NCBI GenBank assembly: GCA_964270895.1 | Contig: OZ185436.1 | Reading direction: 5' to 3' (one strand) | Source: Podarcis filfolensis | Taxonomy: Eukaryota | Length of the DNA: 64,000 nucleotides | Made by a program: the position numbers and the translations under genes | Shown: piece by piece, positions 1,180-55,233 of the stretch | Layout of the letters: each line of letters begins with the position of its first letter | Numbering within the stretch: position 1 is the first letter of the stretch | The notes under the pieces: generated by a model | Told to the model about the DNA's origin: nothing | The model's database searches: none | What the model saw: the letters and a program-made list of their open reading frames with translations, nothing else

Positions 1180-1244
1180 GTTGCAAGGTGGAATCTATAT
1201 TTCTGAATGTTGAAGCTGTAAATACGCACAGAGACAAACCACAG
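1180..1244 (+). CDS. PFKFB4: PFKFB4 penultimate coding exon, (G)[21 protein letters not shown]
   Basis: Acceptor tctgtttacag| and donor CAG|gtaggt; 65 nt, starts in phase 1 and ends in phase 0. The translation matches my recollection of the PFKFB4 C-terminus ([22 protein letters not shown]). Earlier exons lie upstream of the window. Confidence 0.95.
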
Positions 1245-1496
1245 GTAGGTGTCTTCTGCTGTCACAAATGTGAATTTGGAACTCTGCAGGAGGAATGGTG
1301 GTGGTGATGGAGACTGGTTTAAAGCTGAATAACTGGGAAAAAGAAAAAAAGAAAGAAAAGCAGGGAGAGAATTAAGCACTCTCTCCTGCCCCAGTTTTCC
1401 ATTCCTAAAGGATATTGTGGGAATATTGTAGGTACCTGTACTTTAATATCTAGCTTCACCTTTGGAGTAGAGGTTTGTACACAACCAAGTGTGTAA

Positions 1497-1562
1497 GTGT
1501 GTGTGTGTGTATTATATTATTATATTATATTATATTATATTATATTATATTATATTATATTA
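1497..1562. repeat. Compound microsatellite (TG)n followed by (ATATT)n
   Basis: Read directly from the sequence. Confidence 0.95.
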
Positions 1563-2614
1563 GTGACAAAGTATGCTGCTATTCTCTCATATTTAATGCC
1601 CTGCAGGCATGTTACCACAACCTTTGTTGCAGCCCCTTCTTCATTTTCCTACCCTTTTTCTTGCATTATGCCTTATTTAGGCCACCCGGACTATTTTCAC
1701 ACATTATTGAAGCAGCTTCGTTAGTGCCAGATACCCAAATTGTGTGGGTGCTTCTCCATGGCTAGCTGCCTGTGTGGGTGTGAAGCAGAGCTCGGACCAA
1801 TTTTCTTCGTACTTTTGTTTTGTTTGATTTTGACTTTACGCTTTGCTCTTCATTTTAGAAGGAAGCCTCCCACTGAATTCTCTGGCATGCTGAAAGTTGG
1901 GATGACTGTACTTATTAAGAGGCTACTAGCTGCGTGGGGAGGTGTCTACATGATTTGCCAATCAAGAGAGCCATGTATCCCCCCCCCACCTCCCGTCTCT
2001 CATGTATGCACTAGGCCTGGGTGATGAATCAGTACATTGGCCAGGACTGTTTTGAGGGCCAGAGCGCGATGGTGCCTTCATCTTGGTGATATATCGCTGG
2101 TGAACCCCTTGCCGCTCCTGAGTCAGGAGAACAGTAATGTGCTGGTCATGCCTGTTGATGTTATTGGATTCAAGTATGACAAAATGGTGCATATTTATAG
2201 CCCAAGTTATGAGGTCAAACAAAACTATAACCTGTGCAGGATAAATGGCCTGCTCAAATACGAAGTCGGGCCTCTTATATCTTGTTGCTCTTACATGTGT
2301 GGTGAACATTAGAATAAAAATCAAGGGCTATGTATAATGCATTGCAAGATATATTTATGTAGACTGAACCAATGGGAATTATTCTGCAAGTTTTTTAATA
2401 AGTCCCTTGAGAAACAATAACCAAAGTGAGCTAGTATAGTGTCATTGGTTTGAATGGCCTGGGGTGATGATAAGATTGGAAGCTCCCAAACATGTCATTA
2501 TTTCTACTAGAGAATTAGCACACAAATGCCTAATTATACACAATGAAAAATAGAGGAAGATGTGCTATGTTTGCTCCTTTGTGATGCTAGAAAATGACCA
2601 GATCTTCATTATAT

Positions 2615-2860
2615 GCAGGACTTGACATCTTTCCGCAGGGCCTGCAAGACAGAGCTGTTCACCAGGCCTTTGGTCAGGGCGCAGCCTGACTCCCTCCTTT
2701 GGCAATCTTTACAAAACTTTAGTTTATGGTTGCCATCAATTTTGATTTTAATTAATTTTTATAATGTTTTTATAATGTTGCACTATTTTAGTGTTGTTAG
2801 CCGCCCTGAGCCCGGCTTCGGCTGGGGAGGGCGGGATATAAATAAAATTTATTATTATTA
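2615..2860 (+). mobile_element. L2-clade LINE, 5'-truncated 3' end
   Basis: Remnant of the ORF2 C-terminus (QDLTSFRRACKTELF), then the tail gccgccctgagccc...gggcgggatataaataaa and (TTA)n. Confidence 0.75.
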
Positions 2861-4926
2861 TATACCTATTTTTTGTGATGTCATCACCTTCTGCACATGG
2901 TCTCTGACTTATTGGCATCACTTGAGGAGAAATGAAATAGAACAAGAGGTCATGTGCAGTGGCGCACACCACAGTCATTTAATTTGAGCATTTTTAAAAA
3001 TGAAGCTTGCAGTGGATTTTGGAACTTCAGATAAATGCTCTGCAAAACAAAGGGAATTGTTTTATTCTCTGACAACTCATCATCTTCATGCCTGCTTTAC
3101 TTGCGTTTCATGGAATCTTCTCTCCTTCATGACAACATTATGACACTCTCTAACTGCACAGTGCTTTCATAATACAGCGTATGTCATCTGAGTGAATTTG
3201 GCAGCTAATTATACGACTCCACTTCGGGGAAATAACAGTGCCTCAATTGTGACAGTCTGTAGCCTTGTATTCAGGTGATGCTATGGTGAGCAGTGATGCA
3301 GAGCAGACAGCAAGCTGTTCAATGAAAGCCCTAAAAACTGCCACGATTAGGAATTGTGCTGCAGTTGTGTTGCCACCCAGTTGTTTGCTTAACTCAAGAC
3401 AGTATTTTCGTAGCGTTAAGTCGCTCTGTTGGATCTGAATGCTGTGTGTTTTTAGCAGCTTTAACAGTGTTGCCTTACTCTTTTGATCAAGGAGTGTTTC
3501 GCAAATGACTCATCCATGGCCACTTGGCTGGTAGGCAGCTGTTAACGGTTTCTATTTAAACTGGGTGTGAATAAAAAGGTGAGAGAGAAGCTTTTCTGGA
3601 CATGCTGAAGCGTTTAAGAAACACTCATTCTGTAAAATGTGCAAGTCCTTGAAAGGCAACCATGTGTTCATTTGTTTGTTTGTTTGGGTTGGTTGATGCA
3701 GCGGCACAATGCCAGCATTCAGTTCTGATCTGGCTTCATGGTGCATAATCGTGTGAAACTGCAGGAAGAACAGAACCTGGATGAAAACATTAGAATATAT
3801 TTTGGAGATTTAGGATTGGTTTCTGTCAGCTGCTCAGTTTCTCATAGGTTTGGGTAGCAGGGTCTCTGGCTCATCGTAAATGAACATCTTTTGGTTACTG
3901 TAGGTATCCTCTTGACAGTGATAAGATTGTCCACTAGGATTGAGCAGTAACTCTATTTTTAGTGATGTTTCATGGGAGATTTTTTACCATGTTCTTGCCA
4001 TCATATTCTTGATTATGGCAAAATGATACTGGATATCAAATGAATCAAAACGGCCACTAAGACATTTTCCCAAGGCTGCTCACAATTTTAGCCAGCCTTG
4101 GCTGCCAAATTCCTGTTTTACAATGTTTGGATACTGGAAGTAAGTAGGTATTGTAAGCTGCACAGTTTTGGGTAGCAGGTTTAACGATGTTTTGTCACAA
4201 TAAGAATACAAGCTGGCCATATACCCTCATTTCTCCCTCTCCACTTCCTGCTTCTCAGCCATGTTTGTTGTTTTTCTGTTTTGCATTAATCAGGACTGCT
4301 ATGGCTAGCACAGGTAGTGTTATCCCAAAGGGAAACTTTTCCTTCTTCTTCTTTATCCACAATTGAAGAGTTCCCAAGTTCCCAGGGTGGGTTCAGGCAC
4401 TGCTAGCATAAGCCTAAAGCAAGGGAGATTGACATGTTCTTGGACTACAAGTTGCATCATCTCTGACCCGTCCCTGGCTGTCCTGGCTGGGGCTGATGGG
4501 ATTTGGAGTCCAACAGCCTCTGGAGGGCAGTGCATTGATAACACCTGCCTTAAAGTTTCTGAGAAGACAACGGATAGTGTTCTGCTCTTCCGTTGTTTGT
4601 TCTGAACCCATTTGTTCGGAGGTTTCTAGTACCTAAGTTCACAGCATTTTGTGCTCCTGATATATAAATGCTGCTGCTGCTGCAGTTGCACTGGCACAAC
4701 CATGATGCAGTGCTAGCATAGACCCATGATGCTTCAGCAGTGAATTGACCTTAGAGTTCTGTCTTCAGCTGTCTTTAGCTGTTCCTGCTGTGCTGATAAA
4801 CTTCAGAACGTGAAGGCACAACTTGTGACATTTCAGAAGTCGGAAAGGGGCCAATGAAAGGAAATGGTTTCCAGGGCTGAAGGGGAGGAAGAGGATGCGA
4901 GGCTCTAAGGCCCATTAGAGCGTCTT

Positions 4927-5170
4927 ATAAGAACATCAGAAGAGCTTTCTGGATCAGGACAATGGCTCATCTCCTCTAGTATCCTGTTCTCACAGTGGCT
5001 GACCAGATGCCCGCGGGAGACCAGCAAGCAGGATTCAATCACTCTTCCCCTCCCGTGCTTTCCAACAACTGTCATTCAGAAGCTTTGCTGCTTCCAGTTG
5101 TGGAGGCAGAGAATAGCCATCATGGCTAGCCACCATCAATAGGCCTCTCCTCTGTGAAGTTGTCCAAACT
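4927..5170 (-). mobile_element. CR1-like LINE 3' UTR remnant
   Basis: ataagaacatcagaagagc...ctggatcagg...catcctgttctcacagtggc resembles the reverse complement of reptilian CR1 3' ends. Confidence 0.6.
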
Positions 5171-5446
5171 TGTCCTTCCTCACAATGAGCAGAAGCATTA
5201 TAATAATTTATAATAATTTATTATTTATACCCCGCCCATCTGGCTGAGTTTTTTTTTAAAAAAAGCTCATGTACTTATTCTGAGTAACTTAAAGAAGAGA
5301 GCAGTCTCTTAATGATTGCAGGATTTGATCTAATTTTGTGCCAGATACTAAGTTATTGGTAAGTTCTCCATATAATTTGAGGGCTGTAGTTATAGCTTCA
5401 TGACTGAAAGACATGGAAATGTATGCTATCCTAGACAGTAGGAACT

Positions 5447-5612
5447 CTGTATTTTCCGCCCATAAGACGCCCCCATGTATAAGATGGCCCCAATTTTGGG
5501 GGACTCAGATTTAAGAAAATGGGGGGGAGATGTATCTGTGTATAAGACACCCCCTAATATTTGACATTATTTTAAAGGGAAAAAACCTAGTCTTATACAT
5601 GGAAAAATACAG
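5447..5612. mobile_element. Non-autonomous Tc1/mariner (Tc2-like) MITE
   Basis: TIRs ctgtattttcc...ataagac and gtcttat...ggaaaaatacag, with TA on the right flank. Confidence 0.7.
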
Positions 5613-5678
5613 TAATATACAGGGGCTAATGTCACAATATGACTAAAACGATTCCAGTAGAACCTATGCACCAGGACG

Positions 5679-5850
5679 CATAGGAATGTAGGAAGCTGTG
5701 TCATACTGACTCGGCCATTGGTCCATCTAGTTCAGTATTGTCTGTATTCAGTGAGTGACTCTCTCCATGTTTTCAGATAGGAGCTTTTTCTCCAGCTCTG
5801 CTTGCAGATGTCAAGAGATGCTCCACCACTGAGCTATGGTCCTTCTCCTG
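5679..5850 (-). mobile_element. Degenerate tRNA-derived SINE with CR1-like tail (related copies near 9652-9830 and 39990-40146)
   Basis: Reverse complement of a catagctcagtgg head and a ...agcttcctacattcctatg tail; similar blocks recur in the window. Confidence 0.55.
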
Positions 5851-6237
5851 GTACCCAACCCCCTCCCAATTGTTCACTTTTATTTAATGGTATCTGGCTG
5901 ATAAGACTTGCTTTTTGCAGTATGAATGTGCTTTGCATAATGTAATGAATCCCAAGCTTTTAAATATAGTTATATAGTTGAGATACTCTAAACATAAGCA
6001 GTTTCTTTGTGTGTGTTTTGAGGAGAGCTGCCAGCACTTAGCCTGTGGTCCACAGAATTATTAAATGCAGTCTATAAAGAAGGCAATTCCCCTGTCTCTG
6101 TTTTTTAAAAAGCTTTATTGCTCTAGATAAGTGACTATATTTGTTAATTTAACAAGCTCGGCTGTTTACTTGTGAAGAAAACTGACCGGCCATGTTGCAT
6201 GATAAACATTTTCCTCTGTATTTTTATTATTACACAG

Positions 6238-6297
6238 AATGTAGACATTTCAAGACCTCCCGAGGAAGCCCTTGTAACTGTCCCTGCTCACCAGTGA
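6238..6297 (+). CDS. PFKFB4: PFKFB4 canonical last coding exon, NVDISRPPEEALVTVPAHQ*
   Basis: Acceptor tttttattattacacag|AAT, phase 0, TGA at 6295-6297. The peptide matches the human PFKFB4 C-terminus as I recall it. Confidence 0.95.
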   Translation, partial: NVDISRPPEEALVTVPAHQ

Positions 6298-8802
6298 AGC
6301 CCGTGTCCTGATCAGCTATGAAACGTGTGGTGCTTCTTTTCATCATATTATATTAAAATTATTTCAATCGTTCCAATCACTTTGGAATCATCCACAGATA
6401 ATATCCGTTTTTGTGTAGCTCGTGGCTTTTAGAAATCAGCAGACAATCAAATCTTACTCTCCCCTACCTCCTGGGTTGGAACTAATTGGCTGAGCCACCT
6501 GATTACTGGCTTCTCTGATATAACACTTGATCAATTGGTGATTGCTAATTTTGAACCTGATGTTTTATGTCCATTACAGCTTGATCAAACACTCAAACCC
6601 TGTTGGGAGATAATATGGGGCAGTTGTCTATTAATGAGTATTTTTATTTTCTCTTGAGTGATTGGATTGTTTTACATAGAGGAGCAAAATTAATAGTCTT
6701 TCTACAGTTAGTTCCACAGCTAGTGAATAGTATCGGCAATGTAGATAGTCTGCTAATTCATAGAGCCATAGAATTCTATGGCTGTTTAATAGTAGCTTGT
6801 AGGAAATAGTGTTCTTGCCCCTGACTTTGTGGAAGATGTATTTCTGTGATTTCAAAAAAAGGTCTGCAAAATTTATTATGGGATTAATTGATCATTTAAA
6901 GTTCAATTTGTACTTCTAATTACTTTTGACAGCTAATTTTTAAAAGCTAATTTAAAAATGTTAGTTTTTTTTTAAAAAAACCTGCAGGTGGTGTTAAGAC
7001 TCTTTTAAACACCCATTTAAAAGAGGCCTTTTCTCTTTTCGTTCACATGAGAAGGAATGCCTCTTCTTAGAAGTTGCCTGCTATAACTAAACTAAACATT
7101 TTATAAGAAAAAAAAGAAAAATGCTTCTTGCTTCAGGACTCTTTTATTCTATTCAGATTCAGTTTCTGGAAATGGCATGAATTTTAGTTAACAGATTCAG
7201 TCAGTCAACTAAGGTGTTTTTAAGAGGGTGGCAGCCCTAATTTATAATTTATATGAAGAGGACTCATAGTCGTAATGTCTTAATTTGTTTTCTTTCTAAA
7301 GTAGAAACATAGAAATATATTTCTTCTACGGTTTGGCAAACGGAGGCAAACTGCTATTGCTTACTCCCGTGAAGTTACTAGACATTACTAATACCAGGGT
7401 AAACATGCATTTGGAACACTTCTGGATAGAACCACTGTCAATATGGTGTAAAGAAATGGCACTTGTGGAAAGGAATAATGCACAACTACTCCTTTCCCTG
7501 TTGCTTCTCCATTCTAGGCTGTAGATGGTGCAAAGTTGGGCTGCTGAGGGGTGTGGCCTGGGGAGAGAGGGTATGTTGCTGAGGAGGAGCCTGAGGAGAG
7601 TCCTGAGACCCAGACAGAGAAGCCCCCAGGCATGAAGTTCCCAACCCCTGACATAAATTTACCTCCTTGGAGATTCAAAAGCAGCTTCGGGGGGGCGGGG
7701 TCTGAGAAGAAATCATTCTAGTGCACACAATGGCATTTGTGCCTCAAGGTGATGCTCTAAAATTCCAAAAGGAAAAAGGTGGAGCTTCCCCATATGTCGA
7801 GGTGGGCCAGTAAACTGCAGTGCTTAAAAAATAAATAAATCATTTCATACTTCCTGCCAGCCAAACAATTCCCAGGGTGATTCACAAAACCAAACCAAAG
7901 CAGTGTAGCTGCTGCTAACTTACATACTCTAAATTCTAAGCGTCTTGTAAACAAGTTTGGTAGATTAGAAAAAAGGTTGTCACTTGAATCCTGCATTGCC
8001 ACATATAAACAAAACTCTTACAGGGGCCAGAGATGTTCCCAGGAATAGCCTCTCTCCCAGCAGAGGCACTTGCTTTGTTCAACCGCTTTTCACTAGACTA
8101 ACTTCATGTTGGGGGTTGGGGCTGGAGAATCAGCTTCGGTGGTGCTGATGGTTACATTGCTTAGATCAGGAGTGGCTAACCCATCAGCTAAGAGGTTTGA
8201 TGGCTTCTTATTTGAAACGTTTTTGGCAATTTCTCTCCTCTCCCCGCTTCAGCAGAACAAAGAAAACCAATGTCATCAGCATTACAGTGAATAAATAAAA
8301 TGAATTTGTGGGAATTTTGAGTGGGGGAAGTGGGACTTTGAGGGAAAACAATCAGCTAAAAGTATATAAAAGAAAATACAAATAGAATGAATTGGGGAAG
8401 GAAAGAAATGGGTTGACTTTAGATGGAAAGATAATAAAAGGGATTAATTTCCTTCTTTGGCCTTCGCCCACTTTACCATGCCACCCCTGGCTTAAATCTA
8501 GGAGTTTTAGTTTTGTAAGACTGATATCACAATTATGGTGATATCTCGTGGCAAAGTAAGGGAAAGGAGCACATACCCTTGTGAATCTCTAGGAGGTCTT
8601 CCATTTGAGAACTGAAAGAAAAGATCCTAGATACTGGATTTTTTGTTCTTCAGGACTTGTTAAGATTTCTGTATCTATGTATATCTTGGATTCCATTAAG
8701 ATGTTTAACTGATGTCAATCTCAAAGGCCAGATGCAAGACCTGTAACACCCTACAGTGCTTTAATTAGGGATCTCATGTCTTTCCTGGATAATAGTCAAG
8801 GT

Positions 8803-9106
8803 CAGGCATAGGCAAACTCGGCTCTTCAGATGTTTGGGGACTACAATTCCCATCATCCCTGACCACTGGTCCTGTTAGCTAGGGATGATGGGAGTTGTAG
8901 TTCCAAAACAGCTGGAGGGCCGAGTTTGGGGATGCCTGACCCTAGAAGATGGGAGACACTGAACTTTGGCCTGCCTAAGTGGGTGATATCACTCACTCCA
9001 TTTTGTTTTCTTTAACTTAATGGCACCAGCAGGTGGGTGGAAAGATGTTAGGATCATGGGAGTTGTAGTACCAAAACATCTGGAGGGCCGAGTTTGCCTA
9101 TGCCTG
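8803..9106. mobile_element. Composite hAT-type MITE with perfect 20-bp TIRs and an 8-bp TSD
   Basis: TIR CAGGCATAGGCAAACTCGGC at 8803-8822 and its reverse complement at 9087-9106; TSD GTCAAGGT at 8795-8802 and 9107-9114. Confidence 0.9.
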
Positions 9107-10111
9107 GTCAAGGTAATACAGGGAAGAGAGGCTCTGGAAGATCAGGCTATGTAGTATGAAACCCTAGCAGCTTAAATCAAGAGCCCTTTTGATAAGAATG
9201 TGTGTTCTCACCTCACATTTTGTGTTTGAAGAGTACGGATACTACCAACGTCTTCATTCTAAGAGATTTAGTTCATTCTTGTTAACTGAAACCTATATAT
9301 TTCACTTAAGGGTAGAATAACAGCTCATTTTTTTTTGTGGTCTCCGAGAAGGAGAATAGCAACAACTGTTATACTGCTAGTGGCTAGCAGGCCTTGCTGA
9401 AAACACAGGTGTCATATGAATGTCGTCATCTTACTTCTTTGATCTCTGTTCTGCACCAGGTAGTCAGTTTGTAGAAGTTGATGTGTAGATAAATAGAAAA
9501 CGTATTAGCAGCAACTGGAGCAGGTATAATCATTGGGTACATGTCTGTCTGGCTCATTGACAGGACAAAATGTTCATATTGTGCGGAAGAGTTGAGTATC
9601 GGATGCAGTTGGACAGGACAAACTTTGAAAACTCCAATAGGAGTTTGAAAATGTGTAAGGAATGTTGGAAGCTGCTGAATATTAGATCAGGCTGTTGGTC
9701 CATGTAAGCCCAGTATTGCAGTAGCTCTCTAAGGTCACAGTCAGAGGTATTTTGTATTGCCCATTAGCTGAGATCTTAGGGATTGAACTTGGGATCTTCT
9801 GCATACAATGCATGGGATCTACCTTGTCCAATAGCCCTGATCTGGTAACACAAAGCCTATATATAAATGGCTTTTTTTGGCCCGAGCAAAAACTATGTAG
9901 GGCGGTTTAACTTGACCTCAAGGATCAGGTAGCAACTTGCATCCAATGGCTGCTGCTAGAATGACTGTAGTCTAGGATAGACTGAGCTTCTAGGATAGAG
10001 ATTTGCAATTGGCAGCCTTTGAGTCCCTGAAGGGTAATTTCTGGTTGTTCAGACATTCTACTTGTGTGTAAAAACAACTTGCAAGAGGGGAGAAGTGTAT
10101 TAAGCTTCACC

Positions 10112-10247
10112 CACTGTTTTCCTCAACACTTGAGTCACCAAGATGTTGCTGGGCTACAACTCCCATCATCCCTGACCACTGGTCCTGCTAGCTAAGGATG
10201 ATGGGAGTTGTAGTCCAACATCTGGAAACCTAAGGTTGAGAAAACTG
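10112..10247. mobile_element. hAT-type palindromic MITE with the same core as the 8803 element
   Basis: Core ctacaactcccatcatccctgaccactggtcc...gatgatgggagttgtag; ends ...ttcctcaac and gttgagaaaactg. Confidence 0.75.
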
Positions 10248-11206
10248 ATCTAACATGTACAACCTCTTGTATCTGTGGAGGCTTCCTTAAGCAATTTCAA
10301 ACCTTTATCTTCCTGGGTCCTTAATCATGCTGGAAGCCTCCATGACTGTAGGAGGTTGTTTTCTTCAGATGTTTAACATCCCAACTTATGGAGGGTGATG
10401 GAGCCGGAGCTTAGCAATTTGCCTCTGCTTGCTTGTTGTTTTCACATGTCACTGGAATGCCTGAAGACTAGTATGTTGAGTGTTCAATGTGTCATGACAT
10501 ATCTTATCTGTGATGAGAGGTGGTAGTATTACGTAGCTTGTTGCCTAATAAAGTTATTGGTTTAAAGGGAAGGAAGAGTATTGTGTATAGGCATTGTAGC
10601 TGGGTTCAAACTTGTGACTCTCAAGGATCTCTCCCTCCTGGACTTGTGCATGTGTCATTGCATTGACTGTGATAATGAAAACACTTCATTTGGGTTGTCC
10701 AATCAGCTAGCAGCATGTGCTTATGTTGGTAGTTCCCAGTGAACACTGGAAAAAACCAGACTTATACCTAGGGCTACATGAGGGGCCCAGAGGTCTAAGA
10801 CCAAACATTCAAAGTGCAACTAAACCCACATTGGGATCTCTTTGAGTTTCTGATAAGCTGGTGTTTAGAACAATGGAACTGAAGACTGATGCATATTGAG
10901 AAATGTATTCCGGAATGATGGAACTTGTTACAACGCTTGAATATATAGAGGAACCAGATAAGACAAAATATTGTGATTTTATCCAACCCAACTCTATGCA
11001 TATTTTCTGGGAAGCGAGGCTTCACTGATGTTGGTGGGTCTTATGCTAAAGTAAATGTGCATAGGATTACAGCCTTAATTTCACCATATTTCCATGAACT
11101 AGCAAAGGAAAGCCTATAGGTAGTGAGAAGTGTTCAGGAATTGGCCAAAGTGCAAGCATTGTGTTTGAGTGAAGTATATAAAGCTTGCTGTCTTTTCTCT
11201 TTTCAG

Positions 11207-11266
11207 AATGTATGCGTTAGCCGCTCTCGAGAAGAAGCTTTGAGGACTGTACCTAATCATTTGTAG
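11207..11266 (+). CDS. PFKFB4: Putative alternative (duplicated) PFKFB4 last exon, NVCVSRSREEALRTVPNHL*
   Basis: Acceptor gtcttttctcttttcag|AAT, phase 0, 19 codons plus TAG (11264-11266). 12/19 aa identical to the 6238 exon with no indels. Confidence 0.75.
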   Translation, partial: NVCVSRSREEALRTVPNHL

Positions 11267-13490
11267 CACCTTTGACCTCCCCTTGCCAGCACCGTCCCAA
11301 ACTGCTGAAGCAGTGCTAAGGAAACCACTCAGGGACCTGAGAATGAAGGCAGCCTTCAAGGAAACCAAGCAACACAGAAATGCATGCACTCCTCCTCTTC
11401 TCGAAGACGGCGTTTCAACTGCCTGGGTCTGGCACAAGGCAAAGTTGGCATTAAAGGTTGAAATGGACCAAGTATTTGTGGAACAGAGAATGAAATTGCT
11501 TTTAAATTAATATATGTTGTCTTTATCCTGTTGTTCTTCGACTGTGGATGTTAAAAGTGTGAAATGCTGGTGTCTCTCTTAATGCTGTATCTTAACTTTC
11601 TTCTGCAATACTTTCCTAAGCCTTTCTTGCTGTGATTTCCTGTTTTATTCCTATATTATATATAAAATCTTTACTGAACATAGAACAGGTGTTTCTTCAA
11701 CTGAGGATTCTTCCAACTATTTATTTTAGTATACAACAAAAGGTACCACCAGTCTCCTTGTGAGATATATTAATCCAGTTAATATATCAATTTTAGCAAC
11801 AAGCAGTGTTGCCCACTTCAAGTCATTGCTTTGCAGTGAAACATTTGATTTCCTTTCTTTTTTTTTGGTAGCTGCACTAATTTCTAGGTAATTTTACTAA
11901 AGGCTCCACTTGATGCTTCACATCATTTAATGGAAAGCCAGAATAGGTAATATTTTCCCAGATGCATTCCATCTATCTTGTTGAAATGTTCCAGAACTCC
12001 TGGGTTATTATTATTATTTGAATAGTGTGTGAATAGTTTCCTTTCCACATCATGCATACGGCAAACCTATTTTGTCTGCTTATTAAAAACCACATATTTT
12101 ACTTAACTGTTTTACCTGGTCCTCCCCGCCTTTTTACACCCCCTCAAACTCCAAACCCCAAGCAGAGAAGCCTATGAAAAGGGAGGATTTTTAATTGACA
12201 CTAATGTAAACATTGCTCCAAGTGGAGCAGATAATAATAACAACAATAAAACAATTAGCATGGTGCATGGTGGTTACCAGAGGTGAATGGCAATAACAGT
12301 GCAGGGAAGGTATAAGACAAATTACTAGAGAAACCAAATTATTATGAAGCGCTCCTGAGTTATTGGCATTAATGCAAGCTTGTTCTTACCCATCTTCTTG
12401 AACCAAAGTCACAGATGAAGTATTACCTGTTTGGGGTTTTTGTTTTTATTATGTATTGGTGATATTTAAGTTAAAATGCATTGGATGGGTAAGATGAAAG
12501 CGATCCTTTATTGCATATCTTCTACTTTATTGATGAGAACAGGATTTGCACATTCATAAATGGAAACAATCTTCCGTCCCCCCAAAAAGAGGACTCAGGA
12601 TTCTTTCTTTCTGTGAACCTTAAGCAGCCACATCTTTGCCTCGGTGCATTCCTTGAGTGGAGCTCAAGAGCCTAGTGAAGAATGGGGCCCTCTAGGATTT
12701 TCAAGTATTTATATGCAAAGAGGGATACTATGCTGTAAGTGAACTTCTGAAATTGGATCAGTCCTGCTTTAGGGTCACTACCCAACAGGGATATGCTCCA
12801 GATATATCCTGTTGCAATGAATGGGAGGCGTGTGAAAGAAATTCCTGTTAGTGATAAAACTTCATGCATGTTAGGCCAGTTGTGTTTGTTGTACTAAGCC
12901 AATATATAGTGTAAATAATCTGTCCCTGTGATACAAATCAGCAAGCAGCAGATTAGGTGCCTGTTTGTTCTTGAACCGAAGAAAGCTTTGTCCCGTGTGA
13001 TTTGAATGCTTTTTTGCCTTGCTGTCTGTGTTGGTACCTCATCAAACCTTGCCATGCTGTTAATGTTAAGAGTTCTCTGCTATGTAAGCTTTGCCAAGTG
13101 GAGACTCGTTTATGTGGCTGGGTGCTATAATGTAACATACTGCCGTGTTCTTCATTTCTTTAATAAGGTAGCTTAGCAATATATTCAGCATTCTGGAGAT
13201 AAGCCATAAAGCCAACCTTATTTCAGAAACATAAAAAGGACTATGTTAAACTATCAAACACTTCAAAAGCGCTTTAGCTGTATGCCATCCTTTAAGATAA
13301 TATGCCTTGACATCATAATGTATTTATTCAGGTAGATCACTACTTACTGGAGTAGATGAAAAGGGAGAGCTCTGCTGTTGGCCCACAGTACAGTGTCAGC
13401 TGGAGAAGGGGATTTTGGGTAATGGCTTAAATCACAGATGAATCGTGTCAACAGCCCAGCCCTAACTTCTCTAGATGTGAGCCACAAGTA

Positions 13491-18762: not shown

Positions 18763-18858
18763 TTTATTAATTAAAAATAGCAATATTTGAAGCTCAGAAT
18801 CAACTCAAATTATTTAGTTTGATGGACGTTAAAAACTGCCTAGCCATTTCACTTTATT
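18763..18858 (-). terminator. Candidate PRKCD polyadenylation signals (AATAAA on the - strand at 18858-18853 and 18768-18763)
   Basis: Canonical hexamers about 340 and 430 nt downstream of the stop codon. Which one is used cannot be told from sequence alone. Confidence 0.45.
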
Positions 18859-19195
18859 TGAAGGGTAGTACCCTTTGATAACCTCTTTCACCTCTTGAGC
18901 AAAATATACAGCATATACATAATTCCCCCCCCAAACGGATAACTACATTCAAGTAACCACGTACACAATTTACATTTTCCCTACTGCAGAGGAAGTCATT
19001 TAAATATGATTCACAAGGATACTTAAACTCAGCCATGCACAATGAAGCTACCGCCAGAATGAGCACAATTAGTCGCTATTGAGTGTTGTTCGGAATGAAA
19101 GGAAAGAGACGACGGTATCCTTTGATCACATTTCACATGGAGTGCTCGAAAACTTCCATTACAGCAGTACCTGAAAGTTCCTCTGTGCTGATAAA

Positions 19196-45630
<26,435 letters not shown>

Positions 45631-54869: not shown

Positions 54870-55233
54870 TAAAGGTAAAGGTACCCCTGCCCGTACAGGC
54901 CAGTCGTGTCCGACTCTAGGGTTGTGCGCCCATCTCACTTAAGAGGCCGGGGGCCAGCACTGTCCAGAGACACTTCCGGGTCAGGTGGCCAGCGTGACGA
55001 AGCTGCTCTGGCGAGCCAGCACCAGCGCAGCACACAGAAACGCCGTTTACCTTCCCGCTATAAAGCGGTACCTATTTATCTACTTGCACTTAAGAGTGCT
55101 TTCGAACTGCTAGGTGGGCAGGAGCTGGGACCGAACGACGGGAGCTCACCCGGCCGCGGGGATTCGAACCGCCGACCATGCGATTGGCAAGCCCTAGGCG
55201 CTGAGGTTTTACCCACAGCGCCACCCGCGTCCC
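54870..55233 (-). mobile_element. Full-length Sauria SINE of a second subfamily
   Basis: Reverse complement of the gggacgcgggtggcgctgtggg head at 55233 and (taaagg)n tail at 54870; near-perfect 15-bp TSD taattctca(a/t)gatta at 54857-54871 and 55237-55251; many intact CpGs. Confidence 0.9.

Follow-up and report, generated by a model that had tools for sequence, protein, structure and literature searches.

The window analysed here, a stretch of 64,000 nucleotides (nt) from the lizard Podarcis filfolensis (GenBank assembly GCA_964270895.1, contig OZ185436.1), begins inside PFKFB4, whose product sets fructose-2,6-bisphosphate levels, and contains the last two coding exons of this gene. With a probability of about 0.9, the region represents a PFKFB4 3' end in which a tandem duplication of the last coding exon has given rise to two alternative terminal exons, each usable from a shared splice donor. 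The two exons and the peptides encoded by them are referred to as tail 1 (proximal) and tail 2 (distal). The exon pair is real, old and already present in the public annotation of many species, so that it is not new; it was counted as known because public gene models contain tail 2, including a snake tail identical to that of the window, and because its closest sequenced relative has this exon as well. A literature search found no paper on this PFKFB4 exon pair, which seems to be annotated but undescribed.

The penultimate exon terminates in ...THRDKPQ with a full codon at position 1244, followed by the shared donor (CAG/GTAGGT), and both acceptors (...ttattacacag at 6238 and ...cttttctcttttcag at 11207) consist of an AG preceded by a pyrimidine tract. 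Translation and junction phase confirmed the description given in a first-pass annotation of this DNA, according to which a second phase-0 exon with a clean acceptor and equal length lies about 5 kb past the canonical last exon: the junctions 1244 to 6238 and 1244 to 11207 are both in phase 0, and both tails comprise 19 codons on the same strand. Two homologous terminal exons of one phase share a single donor and have separate acceptors and stops, as is characteristic of alternative last exons, and because of this arrangement the tails are mutually exclusive by construction. Poly(A) hexamers are present 3' of both exons (after tail 2: ATTAAA at 11450, ATTAAA at 12082 and AATAAA at 12245), as candidate poly(A) signals. 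The spliced 40-residue peptide matched residues 430-468 of rat testis PFK-2/FBPase-2 (1BIF) with an E value of 6e-14 (phmmer, PDB sequences), and membership of the PFKFB4 family is indicated by the bisphosphatase-domain end together with a PFKFB1/4-type short tail (NV...R....AL.TVP.H.). The features of the window and the orthologous exons are listed in Table 1.

Table 1. Features of the window and positions of the orthologous exons in five tetrapod PFKFB4 loci (UTR, untranslated region; ORF, open reading frame).
Feature	Sequence	Position	Strand	Basis or remark
PFKFB4 penultimate coding exon	window	1180..1244	+	phmmer match to 1BIF; identical to Podarcis muralis L003:65902-65964
Tail 1, proximal terminal coding exon (NVDISRPPEEALVTVPAHQ, TGA)	window	6238..6297	+	canonical PFKFB4 C-terminus; translation; identical to tail 1 of P. 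muralis PFKFB4
Tail 2, distal terminal coding exon (NVCVSRSREEALRTVPNHL, TAG)	window	11207..11266	+	paralogue of tail 1; translation
Start of the 3' UTR belonging to tail 2	window	11267..11640	+	islands conserved in snake, turtle and bird
Sauropsid-conserved block around tail 1, ~225 nt	window	6163..6387	+	exon with flanking intron (~75 nt) and 3' UTR (~90 nt); ATTAAA at 6352
PRKCD last coding exon, convergent neighbour, far limit of the PFKFB4 3' region	window	19196..19315	-	ORF
Penultimate exon / tail 1 / tail 2, Calypte anna	L001	50330 / 53370 / 58012	coding strand	tblastn
Penultimate exon / tail 1 / tail 2, Pelodytes ibericus	L002	29388 / 32911 / 33229	coding strand	tblastn
Penultimate exon / tail 1 / tail 2, Podarcis muralis	L003	65902 / 71273 / 77135	coding strand	tblastn
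Penultimate exon / tail 1 / tail 2, Crotalus tigris	L004	79896 / 85470 / 88506	coding strand	tblastn
Penultimate exon / tail 1 / tail 2, Chelydra serpentina	L005	45404 / 49283 / 56204	coding strand	tblastn

When the whole window was scanned in six frames with tail 1, tail 2 was the only real second match, with 12/19 residues identical and a BLOSUM62 score of 51. The best match obtained from 20 shuffles of the window reached 8/19 and a score of 34, so that the similarity reported in the first-pass annotation stands above this control. The two exons share 34/60 nucleotides. A recount agreed that different codons are used at seven of the 12 shared residues (S5, R6, E9, A11, L12, V15 and H18) and that the stops differ (TGA and TAG), and the earlier statement that the flanking introns are unlike each other was borne out by blastn, which detected no similarity between the 600-nt flanks of the two exons. 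Neither a second copy of the penultimate exon nor any other PFKFB-like exon was found anywhere in the window; since the penultimate exon has no second copy there, only the last exon was duplicated. As judged from the divergence of the copies (proportions of synonymous and non-synonymous differences, pS 0.68 and pN 0.34, by the method of Nei and Gojobori), this duplication happened long ago.

Tail 1 was taken as the ancestral PFKFB4 tail, because A17 and Q19 are also present in the PFKFB4 tails of fish. An origin of tail 2 from another PFKFB paralogue was considered, as some fish PFKFB1-like tails score close, and was not adopted. In some PFKFB1 proteins of cyprinids and loaches (P0214, P0220, P0215), the C-terminus reads ..EEALRTVPEHL or ..EEALRTVPDHL and agrees with tail 2 in R13 and L19, which could reflect either convergence or a hint at the ancestral tail, 19 residues being too few to decide this or the paralogous origin.

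Orthologous PFKFB4 loci were compared in Calypte anna (L001), Pelodytes ibericus (L002), Podarcis muralis (L003), Crotalus tigris (L004) and Chelydra serpentina (L005), together with catfish pfkfb4b (L006) and the locus of the bat Pteropus alecto (L007). The penultimate exon, tail 1 and tail 2 follow each other in the same order on the coding strand in 5/5 tetrapod loci (L001-L005), with a distance between the tails of 318 nt (frog) up to ~7 kb (turtle), and exons orthologous to tail 1 were located in all seven loci. The tail-2 peptide of the window is also encoded in P. muralis (L003:77135-77191), and the recorded gene ranges of Podarcis, Crotalus, Calypte and Pelodytes stop exactly at the tail-2 stop. 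Each tail-2 orthologue is intact: a pyrimidine tract and an AG acceptor precede 19 codons, which are followed by a TAG or TAA stop. Nei-Gojobori counts over ~14 synonymous and ~43 non-synonymous sites gave 10.0 synonymous and 3.0 non-synonymous differences between the window and Chelydra, 13.0 and 3.0 between the window and Calypte, and 8.0 and 0 between Chelydra and Calypte. On these counts, tail 2 is a translated exon under strong purifying selection, because the differences between orthologues are mostly synonymous and acceptor, length and stop are intact. In the 3' UTR that follows, islands are conserved among lizard, snake, turtle and bird.

The proposal of the first-pass annotation that an old duplication has been held by protein-level purifying selection, rather than being a dead copy, is thus upheld by the exon order shared from frog to lizard, the intact copies and the mainly synonymous changes. 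Frameshifts or lost acceptors in orthologous copies and a ratio of non-synonymous to synonymous substitution rates (dN/dS) near 1, which had been named as findings that would speak against it, were looked for in tail 2 and did not occur. Going by the distribution of both exons, the pair is older than the amphibian-amniote split. The frog tail 1 (both frog tails lie within L002:32911-33288) is an exception to both copies being kept by selection: it has lost its stop and reads on for 15 more codons (NVDISRPSEAALVTVPDPHG, then 14 residues up to the next stop). The annotated protein of this species, P. ibericus, uses tail 2.

A protein search with full-length PFKFB4 (P0016), restricted to residues 300-395, returned many vertebrate PFKFB proteins, and the PFKFB4 C-termini among them fell into two classes, tail 1 and tail 2; the read-through ORF at 1182-1304 as query gave mostly intron-retention models and zinc-finger noise. 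Tail 1 was found in mammals, birds, turtles, an alligator and squamates, with a tail-1-type form in fish, and the tail NVDISRPPEEALVTVPAHQ ends 55 of the retrieved proteins. The tail-2 class of birds and turtles, NVGVDRSREEALRTVPNHL, is identical to the tail 2 of the window at 17/19 positions and ends isoform X1 of C. anna (XP_030314161.1, P0098). This isoform represents a cluster of 388 members, and most of those sampled end in tail 2. Tail 2 is often isoform X1 among many birds and is also present in duck and goose entries (P0102, P0103, P0109) and in turtle entries (P0125, P0126, P0132; Chelonia mydas X6 and X9, Chrysemys). A search scored on the last 40 residues of P0098 retrieved no further cluster representatives with this tail; squamate tail-2 isoforms sit within the 90% cluster of Podarcis P0100.

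Among the squamates, the tail of Ahaetulla prasina X3 (XP_058030118.1, P0246) is NVCVSRSREEALRTVPNHL and identical to that of the window, and tail 2 further ends Crotalus tigris X2 (XP_039204140.1; NVCVSRSREEALRTVPNNL), Sphaerodactylus X2 (accession not listed; NVCITRSREEALKTVPNHL) and Anolis sagrei X1 (XP_060621878.2; NVCVNRSRDEALRTVPNHL); in the frog P. ibericus, it reads NVDVDRSSEDALQTVPNHL (KAM8931063.1). The remaining entries ending in tail 2 were P0243, P0248 and P0249, which together with P0246 represent snakes, a gecko and an anole, and P0244 (frog). Models with either tail exist within one species in A. sagrei (X1 and X2, the latter with tail 1), C. tigris (X1 and X2), Chelonia and many birds. 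The junction between the penultimate exon and tail 2 is given by RefSeq models, Ensembl-derived UniProt entries and GenBank submitter annotations. These entries support the use of tail 2 as an alternative last exon, since public gene models splice the penultimate exon to it, and settle the doubt expressed earlier as to whether it is annotated in sauropsids: predicted isoforms exist in squamates, birds and turtles, and also in a frog. Other predicted PFKFB4 C-termini leave the penultimate exon elsewhere (P0266 and P0274 from Ammospiza and Passer, ..DKPEPKLERKTSSQETAGQPGEGN in passerines; P0275 from Malaclemys). Judging from such models, the PFKFB4 3' end may offer more than two choices in some lineages.

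Invariant positions were judged in a 40-protein alignment. All PFKFB1/4-type tails, both tails included, keep N1, V2, R6, A11, L12, T14, V15, P16 and mostly H18. The tails differ consistently at four positions, namely position 7 (invariant Ser in tail 2; Pro, Leu, Met or Asp in tail 1), position 13 (Arg, Lys or Gln in tail 2; Val, Leu, Ile or Phe in tail 1), position 17 (Asn or Thr; Ala or Glu) and position 19 (Leu; Gln), so that Ser7 within R-S-x-[E/D]-[E/D], R/K/Q13, N/T17 and L19 are the conserved marks of tail 2. At position 3 of tail 2, squamates have Cys, birds and turtles Gly and the frog Asp, and the tail starts with NVGVDRSR in birds and turtles and with NVDVDRSS in the frog. The Cys and the SRSR motif, to which the first-pass annotation had drawn attention in the distal tail, are therefore present in squamates but restricted to them and not general marks of tail 2.

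Around tail 1, a block of nucleotides is conserved among sauropsids beyond the exon itself (Table 1). Compared in 25-nt bins that span -75 to +150 with respect to the exon start, the window matched snake, turtle and bird at an identity of 0.67-0.92, falling to ~0.3-0.4 beyond the block, so that most of the block is 70-90% identical among lizard, snake, turtle and bird; conservation around tail 2 ends at the exon borders. Alignment showed the tail-1 flanks not to be conserved in the bat, whose locus has no tail-2 choice. Between window and turtle, pS was 0.21 for tail 1, 0.71 for tail 2 and 0.46 for the penultimate exon. The low synonymous divergence of tail 1 and the block suggest a nucleotide-level constraint beyond coding, and the block at 6163-6387 is a candidate control region for the choice of the proximal exon and its poly(A) site.

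In the mechanism that we propose, the donor after 1244 would be joined to either the proximal acceptor (6238) or the distal one (11207), and since stop and 3' UTR come with the terminal exon chosen, each mRNA and its protein would have a single tail. Elements within the block at 6163-6387 would control the use or skipping of the proximal exon together with its poly(A) site. The tails may tune the regulatory C-terminal end, with the distal tail changing how the bisphosphatase end is regulated, possibly by phosphorylation of the invariant tail-2 Ser in its acidic R-S-x-E/D-E/D context, which presumably fits a casein-kinase-2-type site, as predicted from the motif. We infer an effect of the tails on the balance between kinase and bisphosphatase. 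The N- and C-terminal ends of PFK-2/FBPase-2 isoenzymes contain regions that modulate both activities, and no post-translational modification was on record for mammalian PFKFB4 as of 2013 (reviewed in PMC4178209). A more far-reaching version of this mechanism, in which a regulated tail switch predates the amphibian-amniote split and was lost at least in placental mammals, the tail-2 Ser makes PFKFB4 phospho-regulatable in frogs, reptiles and birds, and the 225-nt block acts as the cis-acting switch, is put forward tentatively and would more probably fail than hold. The literature search found no paper describing such a tail switch, a regulation through this Ser or the block.

Several points weigh against the interpretation of tail 2 as a used alternative exon. 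The public tail-2 isoforms are mostly computational predictions (XP_ entries and pipeline models), and when the spliced 40-residue peptide ending in tail 2 served as query, the matches consisted of four genomic ORFs that read through the penultimate exon, with no transcript-derived junction fragment among them, the length window of the search having made it uninformative. Moreover, the exons comprise 19 codons, which leaves few sites for dN/dS, with saturation in several of the synonymous distances, and the AlphaFold2 model of P0246 (40-sequence alignment) was poor, with a mean predicted local distance difference test score (pLDDT) of 57 and values below 50 for most of the tail. The predicted status of the entries and the missing junction fragment would also be seen if the exon were conserved and modelled but rarely or never spliced in this lizard, the models having spread by homology prediction and the conservation serving another role, such as that of an RNA element in a long 3' UTR. 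We consider this improbable, given that the substitutions are codon-periodic, with synonymous far above non-synonymous changes and with frame and stop kept, which is unexpected for a non-coding element, that several types of source agree on the junction, and that in the frog the annotated C-terminus is tail 2 while tail 1 lacks a stop.

The low DNA identity of the copies within the window and their dissimilar flanks might be taken to mean that tail 2 is a decaying, unused relic of the exon duplication. Such a relic would hardly keep acceptor, exact length and stop in 6/6 tetrapod loci (the window and five others, from frogs to amniotes), nor differ between orthologues by overwhelmingly synonymous changes and be followed by conserved islands in its 3' UTR, and we give this explanation next to no weight. 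An assignment of the distal exon to a separate transcription unit, located between PFKFB4 and PRKCD, is similarly very improbable, even though the exon lies 5 kb past the canonical stop, in what would be intergenic DNA by mammalian experience: its phase matches the PFKFB4 donor, the window holds no other PFKFB-like exon to which it could belong, the next gene, PRKCD, is on the opposite strand and ends at 19196, and annotated full-length PFKFB4 proteins bear tail 2.

Two alternative terminal exons of PFKFB4 itself thus remain the preferred reading, and in this respect the window exon does not differ in substance from the predicted sauropsid and frog isoforms, with which it shares the gene, the exon position after tail 1, the 19 codons and the core RS-x-[ED][ED]AL-x-TVPNHL; it is their orthologue in another lacertid. 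Canonical mammalian PFKFB4 (the testis isoenzyme, rat 1BIF) ends in NVDISRP[SP]EEALVTVPAHQ, and tail 1 of the window is this common mammalian tail, whereas tail 2 is without counterpart in the 10 kb of the P. alecto locus between PFKFB4 and SHISA5; the C-terminal variants of rat mentioned in PMC4178209 were left out of this comparison. The C-terminal splice variation of PFKFB2 and PFKFB3 (exon 15 and later exons; PMC4178209) follows a shared principle, a constant catalytic core combined with alternative 3' exons, but in PFKFB4 a single short exon has supplied both choices, as paralogous copies of equal length. Non-mammalian tetrapods retain a second, equally constrained tail, which ends many annotated bird and turtle isoforms, and work on PFKFB4 in chicken, Xenopus and reptiles should therefore ask which isoform is measured or expressed. 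This question touches studies of development, hypoxia, and cold or fasting physiology. To our knowledge, PFKFB4 has been studied almost only in mammals, where the C-terminus is the single canonical one.

Outside the tetrapods with both exons, catfish pfkfb4b carries one tail only, of the tail-1 type, and the downstream DNA retrieved contained no second copy. The bat locus has tail 1 only, no tail-2 exon being found in the 10 kb between PFKFB4 and SHISA5. The first-pass annotation had known of no second exon in mammalian PFKFB4; this holds for the bat, the single locus on which its absence from mammals is based. In hummingbird, frog and Podarcis, a gene for a protein kinase C of 685-686 amino acids (PRKCD) follows PFKFB4 tail-to-tail, and the bat gene instead has UCN2/COL7A1 upstream and SHISA5 downstream. 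The window, with its convergent PRKCD exon, shows the arrangement of non-mammalian tetrapods, in keeping with a PFKFB4 orthologue. A rearrangement beside the PFKFB4 3' end may have accompanied the loss of tail 2 in mammals, as far as can be inferred from one mammal.

The window and P. muralis are 94-96% identical over the 21 kb shared. An interspersed repeat of ~365 nt, present in P. muralis at L003:75600-75963 and 18794-19158, has counterparts in the window at 54870-55233 (93% and 90%) and 32489-32842 (81%), and a separate match of 345 nt links window positions 44817-45160 to L003:41194-41537 (88%). One copy of the repeat lies between the tail exons of P. muralis; at the corresponding place, the window contains a shorter stretch (9854-10047) that does not align, a difference between the two species.

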